This document shows positions 18,001-32,400 of a DNA stretch of 64,000 nucleotides, in pieces. The stretch comes from Dimorphilus gyrociliatus (taxonomy: Eukaryota; Animalia; Annelida), in contig CAJFCJ010000005.1 in assembly GCA_904063045.1 (NCBI GenBank), positions 3,032,165 to 3,096,164 on the forward strand. The letters are read 5' to 3'. A program made the translations under genes and the position numbers. Every line of letters starts with the position of its first letter. Positions within the stretch are counted from its first letter, which is position 1. The notes under the pieces were generated by a model that searched no databases, was not told where the DNA came from, and was given only the letters and a program-made list of their open reading frames with translations.

Positions 18001-21000
18001 TTTACTTGGCCATTTTATTTCACCCAAGACCTTAATTGCTACCGTATCATTCTTTATAACAGCATATTCTTTAGGTATTTGGTCTGGAAGGTTAAATAAA
18101 TTTTTTAAGCGAATAATTCATTGGTTATTCATCGTATTGAAATAACTAAGCGTTTCTTTTTCTCATCCATACCCTGGAATTGATGGATAAGCAGATTGCT
18201 TTGCCTATTTCCGCTCTTGGTAAAGCTTACATGGCCCTTTATATTTTAAGTAAAAAAAAAATAAAACATATTATTAGTAAACTATTAGACGCTTTTAAAG
18301 AGGTTGTGAGAGAAGAAAAGCTAGACGGCGTCTACTTACGCTAACTCCCCTGAAGGACGTTTTTTTCATACTATTCAATAGCACTTCATGAAATTCCGAA
18401 TTGAAGAAATAAGTAAAGTCCTTTAAAGTTAAAGGTCGCAGAACCTTATCATCTCCAATTTTTACTGGAATAGTCTACGTGGATAATAATAGAGAGTGTG
18501 AATAAAAGGACATACGTGGAGGATATACGTGTAATTAATTAAAAATCTAAATGGGAGATTTATTCATCTGCACATGAAAGATTTAATAATTTCAGTCATA
18601 ATTAATTATTTTACCTGATTCTTTAGAACATCCTCAGAGGCGTTTAAACTTAACGCTATTGCCCAAACAGCGTCATAAGCGTTGGCATGATAGAGGCTTG
18701 TACCAAATCGGCTTACAGTTGGCCACATTGTATATCTTTTCAAATATTGGTTATAAGTCTAGTAAACATTGTAACAGAACTTATTTAAGTATATAGAGCT
18801 ACGAAAAAATTAATAGACCTGTCCAGAAACAGTAACGATGCCATCATCCTCTCTTTTTACGTCAGAGACAGTTAACGTTAATTCTAAAGCTTTCCAAATA
18901 ATTTCAGGTTGGCAATCAGTAGTTCTTAAATTTTGCCATCCAGGTTCATAAAATCCAGGTATAATCCATTGGTAACCAGGACCAACCATATTTAGAGTAT
19001 AGGCTTCGCAAAGTACTATTCTAGCATGGTGTTCATTGCCGAAAAAGACCATTATTCTACCATTTTTTTTCTTAATATTCATTAAATTATCAATTGCCGA
19101 ATTTCTAAAAGATTCAGTTGTTATCAATGTCATATTATCTAAACGTATCATTCTACGAAGTAAATTCATTGTTAGATCATAAGGCATATCACTTTCGTGA
19201 ATAATAGAAACTTTTCTCCAATTAAAGTGTTGTAATACCAATAAAATGGCTTGCATTATCTTTTCATAAGAAGGAATTGTTCTAAAGAAATTCGGAAAGT
19301 GTTTTTTACTGGAGAGATCAGGACTTCCGGCAGCAAAAGATACCTGAAAGATGTGAATTATTCTATTTCCTTTATATGAAATTATTTATCATAGACAAAT
19401 TTAAAATTTAAAATATTCTCTTCATAAAATATTTATGAAAAATTGAATATTTTTTTTATTAAAAAAAATAATGAGGAGATAGAAAGAATTAAAAAGAATC
19501 TTAATCGATTAACTAGCTAGCGCAAAGTCACGTCTATTCCAATCTAATTAACGAGTAGAATAGGAATTGTGGAGTTTCCTATTATTGGTAGATTTTTTAA
19601 CTATAATGCTTTCAGACTATTCTGAACTAACTGAAATACAAGAGACACAAAGTCACGGTGTATTGCCAGACAGGGATAGGTTATTTAGAAAGAAACAAAG
19701 AAAGATGAGAGAAAAAAGAGATGGTACACAAGCTCTATTTTATTTTTAGATAAAAAAAATTATTATTTTCTTATTCATTACAGCTAGCTCTATCACAGGA
19801 AAATTCTCTTTTCCATGCTTTCAATCGGCTAATAGTAGTACTATAAGATTTATGTTTAATCCTAGAAAGCAAAATGGCAGAATAGGTTAGTTTAATTAAC
19901 ATTCGCTGACTAATATTTGAATAATTAGGAAATATAATTACAGAAAGTAGAATTGACTCTACAGCTGCCATATTTACTGATATTGAAGATGGAAATGCGC
20001 CTTTGAATAGGGTGGAAAATTTTAATATGGAACTGGGGCTTACTCAACAAAACTTGAGGGAATTACACAAGATATTTCTTGTAAGGATTTTTGCACTTTC
20101 TTTCCCTCTTCTCTCTTTACCATCTTTAATTATTTGAAGGAGAGAAGAAGGAAAAAAATCGAAATATTACTTGTTTTCTCTTTCTTTATTCGTTAAGGAA
20201 ATCGATCAAGACGGTAGTGGTGGAATTGATCAAACAGAATTTCGAATGGCTATCCAAAAGTTAAGAGAAATTACTGGACACGATATAAAGGATGAGGATA
20301 TAGATGAAACCTTTATGAAGATCGATGCAAATTGTGACGAACAGGTCGATTGGCAAGAATATTTAACCTACGTATTAACAAGTATGAAAGAAAAAGAGAC
20401 TATGACTAATTTATATAAAGAAAAAACTCTACCAAAGCAAGCTAAGCTTGTCCATAAAATGTACAAATATCAAAAGACGCTCGATACGTGCGTTGTAATT
20501 TTATGGTTACCGATTTTACGTAGAGAAAACATTCGCAATGCTGTGTTTTATAAAACAGTCACTATGGGATATGGGAGATATTTAACAGTTAGCAGGGACG
20601 GTATTTTAAACGTATGGACAAAAGATTTATGTCATGAGAGACGAATAGAATTAGACTCAAATAAAATTTGGGTAACTGACGCTTGTTTATTGTTAAATAT
20701 TAACGCTCTTGCTGTAGCTACAACTAAGGATAAGATAACAGTCTACGAATTAGTAGGTTTCCAGATCGGTAAGCCGGAAAATTGTAATTTTGTTGAAAGA
20801 ACTGTTTCGGTGCTTAATTACTCTATTTAGATTGAAATCCTAAATGTTTTGCTCATTCTAATTTCCTTCAGATTGATACAGGGGTATTTCCTACTTGCTT
20901 GACTTATTGGTTCGATGATAAGAAACCCTATCATGCAACGCTCTTTTGGGGCGATATGAAAGGGAATATTAATATAATAGAATTCAATCAGTGTAAAAAG

Positions 21001-24000
21001 TTATGCCTCTTACAACCTTTGCTGAAATCTAACGACAGTTCAATTAGCACAGTAAGATTATTTCGACTATCAAATTTTATCTTTTCCTATTCTTCTTTTT
21101 TCTTCTATTTCGCTAACGTAGAAAAAAGTCTATTTAGAGAAGAATATTTCTTTTGAAGATTTACTGCGGCAACCAGCTTCCTATTGTGGTGCATTGGCTA
21201 CTCATTTGTCAAATATTCACGAGGACTTTGTTCTCAAAATAAAATATTACCCATCTAAGAATATGTTCATATCGTGCTGTGCAGCGGCGAATACAGCATT
21301 ATACATGTCAGATAGTAGACAATTATGTCAAACAAGGTTTTTTATTAAAAGAGGAGTAACGACTTTCGACTACTGCTATAAAAATAATATGATAGTTACT
21401 GCTGGACAGGATTGCATCGTAAGGAAAACTGAACACACTCCCTGAGTTATTAGTTTAAAATTAGTTTTTGCCAGGTTAGAATATGGGATCCTTACATGCC
21501 CGAAAGACCAATTATGTATTTAATTGGTCACAAAAATCCGGTTGTTTTCGTTATTATTGACGAAACTGGAGGTGAATTGATAACAGTATCCAAAGAGAAA
21601 GATATATTAATATTTGACTTGGCCACTCAAATGTGTTCGCAAACCATAACACGTGGACACGTAAAACTCGGAAAACAACCGGTTAGTTACATTATATAAT
21701 ACACAAGTATGTATACATTTTTTTTAAAAAAATATATATATATATATATACATACTAACTTTTAAAAATATATCATTTCAAGAGGGTAAGCTAACGATCT
21801 AAAGTATAACTATTAGAGATGTTAGTAAGCGCGGTGAATATATATGCATATTTACAAGTATTAATAGCCTATTTAACTTATTTTGACTCCCTTGTGTCTC
21901 GACTGTTTGAGTTTATACTATTTTCAAGCCAGTAAATAATATTATTAGCAATGTCAGTTGATGATTGATCGAGTAAAGAGCGTATCGCCATTTCAGTTTT
22001 CATGGTATTTTGATATTCCTCGTTATGTCTCCATAAATTAGAATTAATTAAATTCATAATTTCTTCGTCTTCTGGAAACTCTGTAAGACCTCGCTTAACA
22101 TTCATAGATAATTCGATTGAAGAGCGATTAAATTTTGCCCATCTCGAATCAGCACTAGGTGTTCCAGGAATGCTAGCTAATTCGGGTGTTTCAATGACTT
22201 TCCACTGCTTAGCAGTCTTTACAGGATTGATATTTACTGGAGCATTCTTTTTCACTTGAGTATTTCCTCTCACTGCTATCCAACTAACTGGAGTTGCACA
22301 ATAATTCGTCCTGCACACTTTCCATCTAGTGGAATAAGCGTCCTGGTAATTCGCTATTTATGTCCTTGTAATTAATCAGAAATTCTCTTAATTGAAATGA
22401 ATCACTTTTACTTACTGTTGTACTGAATATAGGCATTCGAATTAATTGAGTTCGTCAACTGCATTCCGTATGGGTTTTCTTTGGAAAATATCAACGGATA
22501 CAATGGAACGTTCTGTGGAACTACATTTGGAACAATAGCGTAACGTTTGTCTGGCGCTTCAAATCCTCGCGTTAAGCGCGCCGTTTTACGATAATCCCTT
22601 TAATCAATTTACAATGATTAACCATATCATATTCAAATCTTTAAATTAATCAAATTTCACGTGTTACCTCTTGGTGTTTTCCATTTCTTTCGGAATTTCT
22701 CACAAGATTAATGCTGATTGGTCTAAATTATTACAGCATTGGCCTATTTGGCGGGAAAAAATGCACGTGAAGGCCTTATAGGGGTTCGAGTATTACGTAT
22801 AACACTGTCATACTAGTGCTTTTTTTAAGTCATAATCAACTCTTTTTTTTTAAGTTTCTTTTGTTTTTTATCTTGTTTTTCTCGTCTTTTTAGGTGACTT
22901 CAGTTTGCTTTAACTCGTATAGGAAAGCTTTAGTGATTGGAAACAATCAATTATCAATATTTGAGCACAAAAGTCCTAAAGATGAAGAAAAATCGTTAAT
23001 TACACATTACAAGTCATTCAAGTGCATGATTTATAACCAATTGTTCCAGAAGATAGTTGCCAGTGGTGCGGATGGCTATGTTTACGTGTTCGCTTTTGAA
23101 ACGGGAGATAGAATCCTCCAATTCTCAGCCCATCGTACAGAAGTTTATGGGCAGGAGGAAGGTTTGGAAATTACAACTATGGCATTTGATTATTCTCAAA
23201 GACGCTTATTCACTGCCGGAAGAGATGGTATTGTAAGATGCTGGAATTTCAATAATGGAATGATGTTACAAGAACTACGGGAAGCTATTGGTTCAGAGAT
23301 AATGACTATAGCTACCTCACCGAAAAAAAAGATCTGGACTGCTGGTTGGAATAGAATATTGATAGAATATGACGATAATCCAACGACTGTAGAGACTGAA
23401 ACTAAGAAGCTCTTTTACGATAGATGGCATAATGAAGATATTCAAACTGCATGCTGTGACCTGAGATCAGGTAGATTAGCGACAGCTTCATACGATGGCG
23501 ATATTTATTTGTGGAATGTGGAAACCCATCAACCTTTGATGAAATTCAATGCAAGTAAAGGAGTTGTTATTTCCATGTCGCTATATAAAGACATATCAAC
23601 AACAACTAAAGAAAATACACTTGAAGGTCACCCCATTACGGAAAAAGTAGCAAGAGCACGTCAGAGATATATTCCAAGAAATCGGCACCCTTTGTCTGTG
23701 ATCGAAAGAATACGTAACGAACAAAAAAGATCGAAAATGGGTGTCTCCAGAGAACAATCACCCTGCAGAGTCAAATTGAAAGAAAGACGGATGACTATCA
23801 ACAGGCTGCAAAAGGCAACTAAAAATTGTCATAAATTTATAAAGTCAACTGGGGCAACTGAAAGAGGAAAACTGGATTCTAAAGTTATCTCGCTTTCACA
23901 AGTATCTCATTCTTCGTTGTCCAGCACACCTGATAAATTAGAGAAGAATAAAGCTGAGAAACCTTTAAATGACCGTCGAGTTCACTTTAAAACATCGAGG

Positions 24001-26281
24001 TCAAATAGTGTAAATGACGATAAAATATCAGATATGAAGCCAAAATCTAGAAGAATGTCGCAGATTTTGTCCGAAACTTCCAAGATTTTACAACAATACA
24101 TAGAAAATCAGGATCAAGCTGTTTATAAGTTACTAATTCTTGCAAAAAGAATTCCCTCGCAGTTTACGGCTACCTTAATTGCAGCGGGTGCTAAAGGCTG
24201 GATTCGTTTCTGGTCAATCAGACCAGGGGGAGGATTGATAGGGCAATTTAACGCCGCTCATTTAGTTGGAGATTCGATATTATCGATCTGCACAGATACT
24301 TGTAATATATTTCTTTTTACGTCAGACACGGGAGGTTACGTTAAAGTTTGGGATATCGGAGACTATTGTGTGGAAGAACCATTGAACGAAACTTTTAAAC
24401 ACCGCCTCAATTTAATTAGAGCACAGTATGAAGTAGCTTTCCCTCTCTTGTCATTGCCACAAACAATATGGGACAAAGTACTTAAGCAAAAAAAACACGA
24501 ACCGCCTTCCAAGTGTTCATTACCTCATCGTACTTGGACTGCTCCAAAGCTATTAACCTCCTTTAGGGCTCACATGCAGCCAATAAATTCTATTGATTAT
24601 GTGAATGACAAACAGATTATCCTTACTTGCAGTTCCGATAGGAGCATACGGTTATTTTCATTAACTGGACAATTTCTGGGTGTATTAGGTAAAGCGAGAA
24701 AGAATCCCCCAATTTTACTAAATATGTATACCAATAAAGATTTACCGCCAATTGATAAGGACATCAATCAGTTAGATATTATCAGATCAGCACGGACTAA
24801 GTATTATCCCCCACCAGACATTGCTAAAGAAGCGTCTCCAACCACTCTTCACGTTAATAAAATGGGTAAAAGCCGTTTGTGGAAGCGTGTTAAAACAGCC
24901 GTTAGTACAAGTAAACCTTCGGATAAAAAGATCAGATTTGGGAAGACGGTAGGAGTCTCTGAATTTTCTTCAAGATTTAAAAAGCTGAGAACAAGATATT
25001 TGCAAAGGCAACATGGAATGTTTGGCCTATGTTGCAGTGAGGTCAATGAAAGAGTTTACTGTTTGCCACCTTCTATAAACAAGTCTCTCACACCGTTAAA
25101 ATCGAAAATTCTGGGAAATTCTTATAAAAAATTAAGAAATTTTAGAAGTTTTGATGGCGTAAAATGTAAAATTGATTTTCAACAAAATTATCCATGCGTT
25201 TACTCGAATTTAAGGATTCACGAAATGGATAATGAACCGATTGTTCCTAAGCAACTTCAGATGTTCAATGAAGATGAAAAATGGATGCAAAAAGTGCTGG
25301 AAACTGATAAACAGTAAGAATATCTTTTTTAAGTTCATTCTATTATGTTTCTGTATATTTTTACAGTTTCTTTTATCACTTTACATCAGGATTCGCTTAA
25401 AGAAGAAACCCGAAGTTAAATCGAGGGCAAGATCAAGCCCTATATCCGATAAGTTGGAAATTATCCCGAAACAGCCTACAAAGATTAATGACAGTGATAA
25501 TAAGCTCTACGAACGGTCAAAGTAGAGTCTTTTTTAACCTAATACATTTATATCACTCTATTTTTATCCTATAAAACTTTTGATACCTATCAGTTGAAAT
25601 TAAAACCGTTGAATTATGAATAGCACAGAGAGATAATATTCGATATAATACAAGTATAAAAATACAAAATTATTACTGACCTGGACTAGACCAAAATAAT
25701 GCGCTACTCTGGCTACTGGCCAAGTAGAAATAGAGCAACCTCCTCCTAATATCATTATTTTGGGTTCATTGGAATCGGTAAGGTGGTAATAGAAAGTTAA
25801 AAGTGATTCCCCAGCATCGCATTTCGTATCCCTTGCATGAACGATGAGCTTGTACTTTTTTAGTATGTCATTTCTGTTGGTAAAGTTTTATTTAATATCA
25901 CTTTTTATTAATCTTTCCTACTTGCCTTAAGTTAATATCTCGAACTGCCATTTCTATAGCAGGAATAACTCCACCTGTTGCTCTACCTGTGCCATAGAGA
26001 TATTGATAATTTTAGTTTCAATTTGATTAATTGAAAGAACCTTTAGTCAACTCTACATCTACCGGGATAAAGCCCATGATGTGTATACTTTCTCTAGTTG
26101 CATCTTGATCGCAGTTATCTAGACGACTTTCATTTAATGGGACCTTATGGGCTTTTAGTTCACTGCCATTTGGCATAAATGTTCTATATATACTGATATA
26201 TCCATCCGTTTCGTAAGAATTTAGCTGGGATGCAATTGGCGAAAATAAGACCAAAAAGAGAAACTGTTGACAGAGTATCAT
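15097..26281 (-). CDS. GABA-B receptor-like class C GPCR (closer to GABBR2-type); multi-exon with a 6.3-kb intron
   Basis: Signal peptide exon 26281-26041; exons 25986-25926 (GGVIPAIEMAVRDINL) and 25873-25681 (RDTKCDAG...ILGGGCS...LVQ); resumes at 19343 (VSFAAGSPDLSSKKHFPNFFRTIPS). Further exons give AYDAVWAIALSLN, IKMSSPRLNNLI, FAPMFAKTWRVHAIF, LPALNDSK, TLFLLFIPK. Probable terminal coiled-coil exon 15270-15097 (KEEEIADLKRQYERLRMTL...TFY*); the 3' end is less certain. Confidence 0.85.
16776..16803. repeat. (TA)n microsatellite in a GABA-B intron
   Basis: Perfect TA run; a similar run lies at ~17906-17931. Confidence 0.85.
19606..25525 (+). CDS. EF-hand + WD40 repeat protein (WDR49/EFCAB8/WDY-like), nested antisense in the GABA-B intron
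   Basis: EF-hands (DQDGSGGIDQTEF; DANCDEQVDWQEY) in the 20171 ORF, WD40 repeats in several short exons and in the 22894-25317 ORF (LFTAGRDGIVRCWNFNNG; LATASYDGDIYLWN; ILTCSSDRSIRLFS). 1212-nt intron 21682-22893 joins QP|VTSV in frame. Last exon 25390-25525. Start codon uncertain (19606 or 19852). Confidence 0.8.
21878..22684 (-). CDS. Orphan three-exon gene (~224 aa) nested in the WD40-gene intron
   Basis: Exons 22684-22668, 22597-22416 and 22353-21878 are joined by 70- and 62-nt GT-AG introns (donors GTAACA, GTAAGT). They sum to 675 nt and give one open frame MENTKRDYRKTARLTRGFEAP...RDTRESK*. No family recognised. Confidence 0.65.
22717..22769. promoter_or_regulatory. Putative promoter of the nested orphan gene: two CCAAT boxes, an E2F-like site and an E-box
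   Basis: ATTGG at 22717-22721 and 22738-22742, TTTGGCGGGAAAA at 22747-22759, CACGTG at 22764-22769, all 33-85 nt upstream of the ATG at 22684. Confidence 0.45.
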
Positions 26282-26473
26282 GTCCTAAGTTTTAAGTTAG
26301 TTTGTCATAATCAGTGGCATTTATATAACAAGTAGTGAAAAAATCTTTTAACGTTAATGGAAAAGCAGAGATTATATTGTTTATTTAGATTTTGACCTTA
26401 TATATTATTTTTTGCATATAGTCAATTATTTTCAGAAGTCACTAAAAAAACAGATTCATATTCTAGTTTATTT

Positions 26474-29400
26474 TTATTCCGTTTCTTCACTTTCGTCGTA
26501 TGGATCGGAATTTCTTGGACAAATTGGATCTTCCATTAATGAGGCGTTAATAGCAGCCGTCATTCCGTCCCACTCTCCTTCATCTGACACAGTTTCTCCT
26601 GCGGTTGCCCCTACCGTTGATGTCAGAGCGGGGGCAGCAGGAGGCGGTGTTTCTGTTCCTTCTCGAACGTCTTCCATAGGATCTGACGTTAAAGCAACTC
26701 TAGCATAATCGTCGGTATCAATAGATTTACAAAAGTGTATAGCATAACGCAATTTATGACGTAGAACCTCCTTGGAACTATATCGGGGAAGCTTTAGTAG
26801 AAAAAAACAGGTGTAACTTTCTGGGAGGAAATTGTCGGGCGGATGGTATTTATCAAGTATTTGTAACACAAAATCTCGACCTCTAAAATCAGCTATTGTC
26901 CTTGGTAGCCTTGTTCTTCCCCACACAAACCGCAAAAATAGAGATCTTTCATTGTTATCTAGCTCCTCCATGACGTCCCAAAACCACTTCACTAGTTGAT
27001 GATTAGCATCAATGCCCTTGTATGCAGCGACTGACTTAAGCATTCCAATAGGTATATCAGGTGTACTGCAAACCATTGTTTCAAGTTCAGAGCCCGTAAA
27101 TAAAGAAAGTAATGGAACAGGAATAACTTTAGTCATTCCTTCTCTCGCCCATTGGACAGCTGTGTTAAATTCGTTTAATCTATAATCTAAAGCCAATTTC
27201 ACATATTCTTGCTTGTTGGATGGTGTTATGGCGGTATATCGGCTAGATAATTGTATTACATTGCAACCTCCAGCAGCAGAAGGTGTGGTGAATGGCATGT
27301 CAGCCGCTGTAAGGTCGTCATCGCTCATATTTTGTATGTACATTAGTCCCGGCACATAATCTTTATCAATCTCATTTAGGTCTTGGACGTCCAAATTCAT
27401 ACCAGCTAATTGTTTCCAAACTGGTTCTGCAAGTGACAATGATAGAGGGCTACCAGTTCTAATTGCTATTCCAAGTATGATGCCAAAGAAATTAAACATT
27501 TTCTTGTGCCTGACTGATTTTAGTGTGGGATTTAGAATGAAACAATCGCGATTCGCTCCCGATTCATCTCGTCCATTGGGTGTGACAATTAATAAGGGAA
27601 CGATTCCCGACTGCAATTCGTCACACATTTCAGCTATCGACTCACTATAACCGCCACCGCAGTCATCAACCGATTCGCCTGCAAATTTTACTTTCCACAC
27701 TCGGTGTGCTAACATTAAATGATCATTTGATAATTGATCCATTTTTTCGCAAACTTGATAGAATACTGATCTCAAACCATCCGGATCTTTTTCAGATTTA
27801 TTACGCTTCACTTGCATCCTATTAATATCGATAACTGGACCGTGTTGTTTGTCTCTTACCATTGTGCTATGAAGGGTTTTCTTAAAGATGCTCTCTTTGG
27901 CTTGCAATGTTAGCAGAGATCTCAAATTGTTAGATTCTATCGCAGGTACGGATAGCATTGGGAATGAGGGACAGATTAACTGAGATGCAGCATGAAGTAG
28001 GACTAAGCGATTTCTTAATAAAGACATATCCATGTTAGCTAGTTCGCTATACTCTAGAGGTATTGAGGTAGGTAAACGACAGGTGCGGGTCGGCTTTGAT
28101 GTTGACCAGGCAATGGAGTGGGCAGAACCACAGGCCACTCTATTGATTCTCTTTCCATCTAAAGCTGCAACGAGTCGGGGTCTTGGTATTGCATTTGTTG
28201 TTGCGTCTCCTAATTGACCTTCATCGTTATCACCCCATGTATATACATCACCCGTATCAGTACATGCAACACAATGTAAAGATCCACAAGCAAATGTAAC
28301 GATCTTCTTTCCCTGTAGACCAACAACCCTCTTTGGATTCCTAATATGATCATCCGTCCCATGACCAAGTCTCTGATAATCTCCTTTTCCCCATGTGTAG
28401 ACAGCTCCAGATCTAGTTATTGCGACACTGAATTGAGAACCACATTCCACCTTACAAACTCCCAATCCAGTCAATTTATCAATTTTTTCTGGTATTTTGC
28501 ATCCTTCTGAACCTCCTCTACCAAGTTTCCCATAGTCTCCGTCTCCCCATGAATATACAAAGTCTCCTTCTGTTATGCAGAGTGTTTGTGAATCGCCAGA
28601 GCCACACGCGACATCTAAAACCTTCATTGATCTTAATGTTTCCACAATCTTTGGCTTCGTCTGATCTTCGCTATCTCCATGTCCTAATCGCCCGTAACGA
28701 CCTTTACCCCATGTATATAATTCCCCTTGGGCACTAATAGCTGCACTATGGGCACCTCCTGCGGCAATATCTGTCACTTCCTTTCCTCGCAAACTTTCTA
28801 TAATTCTAGGCTTATCGCAAGTCTGTCTATTTCCATGACCTAATTTACCATCTTCTCCTTCACCCCAAGAATAGACGTCTCCGTCCGCCGACAAGGCTAG
28901 ACAGTGCTTCCCTCCGGCGTTAACAGAAACCTTCTTAATGAAAACGTGTTGAATTGACTCTAACGTGGTCGGACTGGAAACACATTCATTGGAACCAATT
29001 CCTAAACGTCCTGACGCTCCATAGCCTGTAGCATGAACTTTACCGTCGCTTGAGACGATAAATAAAGTTTGCTCGCCCCCAACTATCTGTATTGGTCTGA
29101 GGTTGGCAAAGGAATCACAAGCAGTAGGGACTTTGACTTTTGCACCTTCCAATCCACCCAGCTGACCCCTATGATTGTGACCCCATCCCCAGATTATTCC
29201 CGAACCAGCCCAGGATAAAGTCCATTCGTCTGGGCGTCGGATATTCCATGTTAAAAGTTGTTCATCTTTACTTCGAGTAAAGGTGGCGTGATCTTCGTAT
29301 AAGCGTGAAAGGTTATATGTTGCCACTTCTGCAGAATCTCCTAATTCCTGAACTTTTTTCCAAACTCCTTCACAAAAGGATGACGGAAGAGGAGTTCTAT

Positions 29401-32400
29401 ACAATAGAGCCTCAACGACCCTCTGAGCTTCACATGCTTTTCTAAGCCAGGCCCACTGTTGAGATTCTACACAAATAGACAAAGAGTCTAAGCTAAGATC
29501 GGATGCTAGAGCAACAAGAGTGCGGAAAAATTTGGAATGCATTAGCTGTTGATTCTTTCTCAAGTATGATTCTTCATAATCAAACTGTCTCTGCAATGTT
29601 TCAGGGAGTGCGGCTACTAGAGACTGTAGAGCTCCTTTATCATTAGATAACGGTCCTACCGTGAGATATGAGTGAAGAGATCTTAATTGATCCAAAGCCC
29701 ACATTCTTTGTGAAGCCATGAGACAAGGTAGTTGGGCAGTAGTTGCTAATGCAGAAGCCATCCTCGGTAGAATTCCAGATTGCGATTGAAGGACACTCTT
29801 AAAATCCAATAAGCACATAACTAGCTGTATCGAAGGTTTTGTAAGCAACGCTCTATCGCTTAGAATATAATCGGGAGTGGACGATGCATGTATAGGATAG
29901 ACTGTAAATTTCCATCCCCAGCCATTTACTGAGTTATCACTCTTAAACTTCCATCTTAATTCGTCACCAGCAACAACTACGGGATGGGACCAGTCAGCTA
30001 GATCTCTTCCTGAGCGTTCACATACTACTTGACCATTAGAATCGATTATCGTCAAAGGATCATGACGCCTTTCCGTAGAACAACGTTTATCGAATTCAAC
30101 CCTTAGGGAGTGGGCGCCAGGTATCCTTACAACATCAGTTGAATTACACTCATCTGGATACGGATGAGGTGATTCTACTATTTCGGGTTTTTCTGATATT
30201 TTAGACGACTCTGTATCAGCTGCAGCTTCCTCTAGCTCAACAACACATAATTCAAGGATTAAATCGCTCATTTCGCATGAATGCTTAGCTAAAGCTTTTA
30301 GAACGTGGGTGAGTTCTTGTTTGTTGCACATTCGTCTCGTTACGCACAATTTCAATAAATTAACAAGCATTCGAGCGTCGTCAATCATTAATTTATAAAC
30401 AAAGTCATCAAGTGTTGAATGACTTTTAGTTGCTTCGATTGGTGAGAAAGTTTCGGCAGCTATGCAGTCGGCAGGAGATGCTGCTTGAGCTAAGTTATGC
30501 ATTGAGGGAAAGTTTGATGCAATTTGTCGGTCTTGAACTGTTTCGTTTGATAACGGAGCTACCGAAAAGGCGCTTATTATGGCTTGGCGGGAAAAATGTA
30601 TACGAAGGGCATTTAAAATGTGAGTCAAAGCAGACTGACGAATTGAGAGAGTTTTTTGAGCAAGGACTGCCCTTGTTAATGATATTTTGGCAACGTTCAT
30701 TTGACGTTCAACAGATTCAGATGAATCTTCTTCATCATTCGATCCTATTACGTAAGATTGTCCCATGGGATCATTCAGCACTTGAAAGAAGACCGGTTCA
30801 TGATTAACCGGTGCTGATATGTCGGACGTAGTCCAAGCAACCGAATGGGATGATCCACAGGCGACTTTCGTTATTTTATGACTTTCAAGCCCGTGAACTA
30901 ATGTGGGTACCTTGTTGACTTGAATGTTTCCATTTCCTTGCTGACCATGGTCGTTGTCACCCCAAGCAAATACTTGTCCATTGTCCGTTACAGCCAAACA
31001 ATGAAGGGCACCGACTGCTACATCTACAATTTTATATTGTTCTAAAACTTCGACCTTTTGGGGTTTACGTGCATGTTGCTCATTCCCATGACCTAGCCGA
31101 TAGTAATCGCCTTTACCCCAAGTCCATACTTGGCCTAAAAAAAAGTATTTAATCAAGTAAATTTAACAGAATAAAGGGGACTATATAGCTTACCTGACTT
31201 AGTCAGAGCTAAACTAAATTGGGCGCCACATTCAATTTTGCAAACTCCCAAGCCGCTAAGTCGGTCGATTACGTGCGGGGTGTTGCAGCCCTCTGAACCT
31301 CCTCTTCCCAATTTGCCAAAGTCTCCATCTCCCCAAGACCAGACTTGATCGTCGTCAGTTAAGGCTAATGTTTGAGCATCTCGACTTCCACAGCTTACTC
31401 TAACAACTTAAAAAGACAAGCGAATTAATAAAAATAAGCAAACTTTATCTATTCATTTACTCTACCTTTGTGCTGTGCTAAAGACGCAACGATTTTAGGT
31501 CGCAACTGATTAGCATTATCACCATGCCCTAATCGACCATAATCACCTAATCCCCATGTATAAAGCTCTCCCTCTTGTGATATAGCAGCGCTGTGAGCAC
31601 TACCACAAGCTATATCTTTGATCCTTTTGGACCGTAAGGCTTCGATTAGACGTGGTTTATCGTAAGATGTTCGATTAAAGTGACCCAATTTTCCATCATC
31701 GCCCTCACCCCAGGAGAAAACCTTTCCGTCAATAGTTAAGGCCATTGTGTGACGCCCACCGGAATGCACGGCTATTTTTTTGACAACATAAGCGCTTAAG
31801 GATTTCAATTGTTTTGGAACTGAGACTGCGCCAGATGTAATCCCTAATCCCAATCTTCCTCCTGTTGCCTCTCCACATGCATATACTCGGCCATCATGAG
31901 TAACTGCAAATAAAGACTTACTTCCTCCACAAATATCAGCTACTTTTAAACTTGATAGATTGTCGTTCAGGAAAGGCAATTTTATTTTAGATCCTTTCGG
32001 ACCTCCCAATTGGTCCTTATCGTTGAGACCCCAAACATAAACTTGAGTTTGTATTCTTGATGGAAATTTATGATCTTTCGGAAGAGGAGGGTGAACAATC
32101 GCTCGAGAGTCTTCGTCTTCTTCGTCTGATGCTAAAAATTTAACAGAGGCAGCAGCTCTATCTTCCTCAGCACACCTTCTGCCTACAATACTAAGACCAT
32201 GGATTTTGCAATCTATTCCGGAACTCCTACATTGTTTTATTTGTATCTCGATAATTTTATAATATGCGCTGGCGTCTTGAATTAAAACAACTAGATCGTC
32301 GTCTGATTGAACTTTAACCGTGTGCAAAAGTTCTAACTGATTTACTGATTGACCAACTGAAACCGTGATTAGGCTGGGCATATATGACGCATCTGATGGA

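Follow-up and report, generated by a model that had tools for sequence, protein, structure and literature searches.

Nested genes, in which one gene lies within an intron of another, account for about 10% of the genes in Drosophila and are mostly found in an opposite-strand arrangement; "a few" Russian-doll cases, with one nested gene serving as the intron host of another, have also been recorded (PMC5174743). These Drosophila Russian-doll genes (Assis et al. 2008, cited in PMC5174743) provide the comparison for a locus of the annelid Dimorphilus gyrociliatus, the genome of which measures 73.8 Mb, has a median intron of 66 bp and gives no evidence of trans-splicing or operons (PMC7854359). The locus belongs to a window of 64,000 nucleotides (nt; NCBI GenBank assembly GCA_904063045.1, contig CAJFCJ010000005.1, positions 3,032,165 to 3,096,164 of the forward strand; all coordinates below are those of the window). 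It comprises a GABA-B receptor gene on the minus strand, an EF-hand/WD40 gene on the plus strand and a small three-exon gene, annotated as DgyrCDS3809, on the minus strand. The 20.8 kb taken from the assembly at this locus agree with the window at every base.

Three protein-coding genes are very probably truly nested here in two steps, in Russian-doll fashion. The outer gene, on the minus strand, would encode a class C receptor resembling GABA-B receptor subunit 2, with a 6337-nt intron within its ligand-binding domain; the middle gene, the opposite-strand EF-hand/WD40 gene, would almost fill this intron; and the inner gene would be a lineage-restricted gene of 224 codons and three exons, on the receptor's strand, in a 1212-nt intron of the WD40 gene. 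The receptor primary transcript is spliced over the entire 6.3-kb insert, as an RNA contig shows, and the two introns of the inner gene are spliced as well. Each guest would be driven by its own promoter, located in the conserved spacer that directly precedes its start codon, and the long introns would owe their length solely to their guests. The layout of a gene in an intron in an intron, the opposite-strand orientation of the direct host-guest pairs (the commonest arrangement, ~71% in D. melanogaster) and the shortness of the guests relative to the hosts are the same as in the Drosophila cases. The present nest differs from them in its setting, an annelid genome of 73.8 Mb with a 66-bp median intron, in host introns that consist almost of the guest only, in a middle gene that is large (~1300 codons) and not a short young duplicate, and in an innermost gene with introns of its own. 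The locus is a well-supported further example of a known but rare class and no new kind of system.

Transcript evidence was obtained from the sole public run found (X1, of 2017, from one study), which is stored as unstranded contigs with mean depth only and no transcript ends; the absence of introns from its contigs indicates that it is RNA. All three genes are represented in X1. The original suggestion was that the three transcription units may interfere with each other or be active in mutually exclusive cell types (neuron versus ciliated or germ cell). Reading frame and splice sites place the host intron of the receptor at 19344-25680 on the minus strand (6337 nt, GT..AG, phase 0). The receptor frame stops at the end of exon 3 (25681..25873, minus strand), which reads ...GGGCSISTWPVARVAHYFGLVQ and is followed by GTCAGT with the donor GT at 25680-25679; it picks up again after TTTCAG, at 19343, with exon 4 (18819..19343, minus strand), which begins VSFAAGSPDLSSKKHFPNFFRTIPS (VSFAAGSP). 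Contig 1 of X1 (2518 nt) covers 19250-19346, and its next 30 letters are those of 25684-25713, a sequence with a single occurrence in the window. The apparent offset arises because CTG is present at both 19344-19346 and 25681-25683, and the true receptor junction is therefore 19343|25681, as taken from the loose end of contig 1 and not from a listed joint. The exons of the inner gene are transcribed, and they are absent from this mature receptor contig.

Protein comparisons agree with the joint. Exon 3 matches positions 18-75 of the Pfam ANF_receptor profile and exon 4 positions 78-210 (E 3e-24), so that the two matches are consecutive across the intron; on the human GABBR2 chain 4f11_A, the corresponding matches are residues 52-111 and 114-255 (E 1e-25). 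GABBR2 chains are the top matches in the PDB (E ~1e-25 to 1e-26), followed by GABBR1 (E ~1e-17). The annotated downstream receptor product carries the ANF_receptor and 7tm_3 domains in the order of class C G protein-coupled receptors. The exons flanking the intron have their best match in the Venus-flytrap domain of GABBR2 (PDB 4f11, 6uo8, 9jqx chain B), with ~35-40% identity over the compared parts. Both the donor and the acceptor are kept in a related species, represented by a contig of 27.5 kb (L002), and identity drops sharply just within the intron; exon 3 has a ratio of nonsynonymous to synonymous substitution rates (dN/dS) of 0.12 against this relative. The original prediction of an in-phase 6337-nt receptor intron from 25680 to 19344 is thus borne out by the contig joint and the consecutive protein positions, the two halves of the receptor having been found joined. 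The exceptional length that it ascribed to this intron is equally evident from the adjacent receptor introns of 55 and 52 nt and the genome median of 66 bp.

The plus-strand middle gene is, as judged from sequence similarity, an orthologue of WDY ("WD repeat-containing protein on Y chromosome") of ~1300 codons. An N-terminal EF-hand pair (Pfam EF-hand_7, E 8.5e-11) is followed by WD40 propellers, collinear with the named orthologues. The WDY-type EF-hand and WD40 proteins of Saccoglossus, Mercenaria and Mya have the same order of domains and give near full-length collinear alignments at 29-39% identity, whereas the public Dimorphilus record divides the gene into DgyrCDS3810 (807 amino acids, aa) and a 556-aa protein. 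The coding span of ~19606-25525 lies wholly inside the receptor intron 19344-25680, on the opposite strand as predicted, and the intron exceeds the annotated coding span by just 262 nt and 155 nt at its two ends. A role of the WDY-type gene in cilia or sperm may be supposed, solely from the family name.

The continuity of the WD40 gene across its own long intron (21682..22893, plus strand, 1212 nt, phase 0) is suggested by several lines of comparison. Six orthologues (P0005, P0006, P0007, P0009, P0010 and P0011; 1148-1389 aa) give collinear, gap-free alignments over 21681|22894; in P0007, residues 355-427 correspond to 21475-21693 and residues 424-642 to 22894-23565, while P0005 is a single unbroken open reading frame (ORF) of 1148 aa. 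The upstream exon (21475..21681) ends in phase 0 with ...KLGKQP at the donor GTTAGT and has a dN/dS of 0.05, and the frame restarts in phase 0 after an AG. Both splice sites are kept in L002, and the sequence diverges immediately inside them. The stretch 22894-23025, which corresponds to the 44 codons before the annotated ATG, has no start codon and shows mismatches to the relative of 5/2/21 by codon position; a third-position bias is shared by all the exons flanking the long intron. The WD40 transcript would accordingly run across the inner gene by splicing, as the orthologues, the splice sites kept in the relative and the codon constraint suggest.

The inner gene occupies 22684-21878 on the minus strand, which is the receptor's strand, and encodes 224 aa in three exons; its coding span (21878-22684) is wholly inside the WD40 intron. 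Contig 4 of X1 removes 22354-22415 and 22597/8-22666/7 (CT..AC on the plus strand, equivalent to GT..AG on the minus strand), and this splicing yields the annotated 224-aa protein P0001. The removal of both introns upholds the predicted third, spliced gene on the receptor strand inside the WD40 intron. Exon 1 (22668..22684, MENTK..) has the joint 22596>22667 in contig 4 and matches P0001; exon 2 (22416..22597) has both flanking joints in contig 4 and a dN/dS of 0.20; and exon 3, which includes the stop codon (21878..22353), has the joint 22353>22416, a dN/dS of 0.15 and mismatches by codon position of 22/19/50. The other frames of these exons have a dN/dS of ~1 and many stops, and the inner ORF is intact in the relative.

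A word-based search among 5.8 billion clusters retrieved only the inner protein itself and the 77%-identical ORF of the relative, and phmmer against 1.84 billion representatives gave no homologue beyond the relative's copy. No Pfam match was obtained with the single exons or the whole protein, even at E-values up to 10, nor any usable match in the protein atlas. The structure predictions have a helical C-terminal third and are of low confidence; the AlphaFold model, based on a two-sequence alignment, has a mean predicted local distance difference test score (pLDDT) of 34. The inner gene is lineage-restricted, expressed, spliced and under purifying selection. Its earlier description as an orphan holds in so far as no homologue was found outside the close relative and no Pfam domain was matched, but the gene is already annotated, conserved and selected.

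The block upstream of the inner start codon (22685..22810, minus strand) is conserved in L002 and contains TATAAG, TTTCCCGCC and two CCAAT motifs, and is a putative promoter of the inner gene. The region 22300-22810, which comprises the two inner introns and this upstream block, is 89-92% identical to the relative as compared with ~50% for the other introns and spacers, and the synonymous divergence of inner exon 2 is 0.26 as compared with 0.5-0.8 elsewhere; the high identity and the low synonymous divergence point to an extra constraint on the sequence. Several conserved TAAT-core motifs also occur in 22300-22810. A cell-cycle role of the inner protein, considered in view of an E2F-like site, the CCAAT boxes and the KEN-like SKENPY, was set aside as a weak lead, the E2F-like motif being not above chance in the window (6 found, 3.8 expected).

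Contig 4 of X1 (4716 nt) is collinear with the genome from 20596 to beyond 25249 with only the two minus-strand introns removed, and spans, besides the inner gene, four WD40 exons whose introns are retained, as well as the large WD40 exon. Its end at 20596 is unexplained by any poly(A) signal in the scan performed, which also found no canonical AATAAA right after the inner stop codon. The simplest reading is that minus-strand RNA exceeds spliced WD40 mRNA over 20596-21877 in the X1 library, either as a long tail of the inner gene or as RNA of the host intron. At the transcript level, the inner unit may therefore extend over WD40 exons and would then not be cleanly nested. A further suggestion is that the inner RNA, which would reach at least 20596 and lie antisense to WD40 exons 3-6, forms together with the conserved 22300-22810 region a conserved sense-antisense switch, which is considered unlikely; if true, such a switch would tie together the receptor, the orphan gene and the cilia-type WD40 gene in their expression.

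The public annotation offers a different explanation, with five separate and non-nested genes (74-aa; 807-aa WD40; 224-aa; 556-aa EF-hand/WD40; and a 461-aa receptor without N-terminus), both 'host' genes having been split by insertions. It has the gene calls of GCA_904063045.1 on its side, and the RNA data at the WD40 gene weigh against the nesting: the junction 21681|22894 is absent from the X1 contigs, contig 4 passes unspliced over either boundary of the long intron and retains the short WD40 introns of the plus strand, and depth is 2-6 in the 5' WD40 contigs but averages 90 in contig 4. This large gap between the two WD40 halves could mean an independent expression of the 3' half. The annotated models themselves, however, are difficult to sustain. 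An RNA contig connects both receptor parts, and a 461-aa receptor would begin at position 78 of the ligand-binding-domain profile. The 807-aa model omits 44 conserved, codon-constrained residues before its ATG that begin exactly at a conserved AG, the 556-aa model (19606-21699) reads through a conserved GT donor to a stop, with the downstream sequence not conserved, and the orthologues are single proteins across the WD40 break. The five-gene explanation is, for these reasons, regarded as very improbable. The predicted junction 21682-22893 stands on the orthologues, the conserved splice sites and the codon constraint, but not on the RNA contigs.

The extent of contig 4 raises a doubt of another kind, since it overruns the inner stop codon by 1.3 kb and reaches 2.5 kb or more beyond the inner start codon on the upstream side; the inner unit may thus be neither independent nor confined to the intron. 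The inner ORF could then be no independent gene but exons of a long minus-strand RNA (internally spliced receptor intron RNA or a long WD40 antisense transcript) with an incidental protein, as might be argued from the collinearity of the contig with only minus-strand introns removed, the lack of a canonical AATAAA just past the inner stop and the low-confidence predicted structure. An incidental protein is hard to reconcile with a dN/dS of 0.15-0.20, a third-position bias in the proposed frame only and an ORF intact in the relative; besides, the conserved TATA-like and CCAAT block adjoins the inner ATG and the mature receptor contig omits the inner exons. Moreover, contigs built from short words fuse overlapping transcripts of both strands, so that one contig does not equal one molecule and contig 4 need not be a single RNA. 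This explanation is considered improbable, if somewhat less so than the five-gene one, and the two-step nesting of three protein-coding genes is retained as the preferred reading.

The nest is not confined to D. gyrociliatus. L002 gives one collinear alignment of 12.7 kb at 78.6% DNA identity, running from HERC2 through the whole nest to the receptor and guanylyl cyclase genes; both nesting steps are therefore older than the split from that relative. The synteny check proposed with the original prediction thus shows the entire nest to be collinear in a related species. In another organism, the neighbourhood of P0005 contains no receptor ORF within 10 kb, which is a weak negative in view of the bacterial-style gene calls there. 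Neither flanking repeats nor target-site duplications, which would suggest transposition of either guest, were detected in a repeat search, and an Rfam scan of 19000-26400 gave nothing near any family threshold.

The remaining receptor exons lie upstream of the host intron on the minus strand. Exon 1 (26041..26281), placed by ORF and splice phase, contains the start codon (26281) and encodes an N-terminus resembling a signal peptide, and part of it is annotated as a separate 74-aa gene. Exon 2 (25926..25986), placed by frame bookkeeping, is followed by a 52-nt GC-AG intron at 25874-25925, with the GC donor AAG|GCAAGT here and the GT donor AAG|GTAGGT in the relative; the frame is kept by the GC-AG reading only. 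A HERC2-type ubiquitin ligase gene with a large last exon at 26474-31156 (minus strand) ends ~190 nt upstream of the receptor start on the same strand.

The spacer upstream of the WD40 gene (19500..19605, plus strand) is 85% identical to L002, as against ~31% with many gaps for the flanking spacer, and is a probable promoter or 5' untranslated region of the WD40 gene, the promoter role being a prediction. In the 556-aa model, the exon annotated as the first coding one (19606-19723) differs from the relative without bias towards any codon position (10/12/8); the true WD40 start codon may lie farther downstream, for example at ATG 20027, the first exon or exons being uncertain. The early coding exon at 19929..20080 is covered by X1 contig 3 on 19942-20080 and is dominated by third-position mismatches, with an acceptor at 19928 or 19943 by splice-site enumeration. 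The intron that follows (20081-20197, GT..AG, joint 20080>20198) is spliced in X1 at low depth. Within its 117 nt, 20083-20172 forms a pyrimidine/purine-tract hairpin (fold z-score -2.3) that is not conserved in the relative and has weak, sub-threshold microRNA-like Rfam matches.

The next plus-strand exon carries the EF-hand pair (20198..20809; EF-hand_7 match; mismatches by codon position 9/5/46) and is followed by exons at 20872..21051 (tblastn with orthologues; 3/2/21) and 21122..21418 (tblastn; 10/4/34). The 62-nt intron 20810-20871, over which the minus-strand RNA contig 4 extends, has only 4 differences from the relative and exceeds the synonymous sites of its neighbouring exons in conservation. 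Beyond the exon at 21475..21681 and the long intron, for which six orthologues and the kept acceptor AG were described above, the large exon at 22894..25313 has Pfam WD40 and beta-propeller matches, and the annotation starts its 807-aa gene within it, at ATG 23026. The last intron (25314-25389, 76 nt) leads to the last exon (25390..25525; stop codon 25523-25525), to which the tail of the annotated protein P0003 was mapped. This exon is constrained as coding up to 25525 (mismatches by codon position 2/1/7) and has a 9-nt in-frame insertion in the relative. The poly(A)-signal scan found ATTAAA at 25599, 3' of the WD40 stop.

The main practical yield of the analysis lies in correcting two gene models that are split in the reference annotation of this genome, which serves in studies of genome compaction: the GABA-B subunit and the WDY-type protein are each entered as two records. 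The locus also provides a compact and readable two-level nest that is conserved between two species. Its three genes have their promoter, splice and poly(A) signals packed into 6.3 kb at spacings of no more than a few hundred bases, and this closeness makes it a convenient locus for tests of transcriptional interference and intronic polyadenylation.

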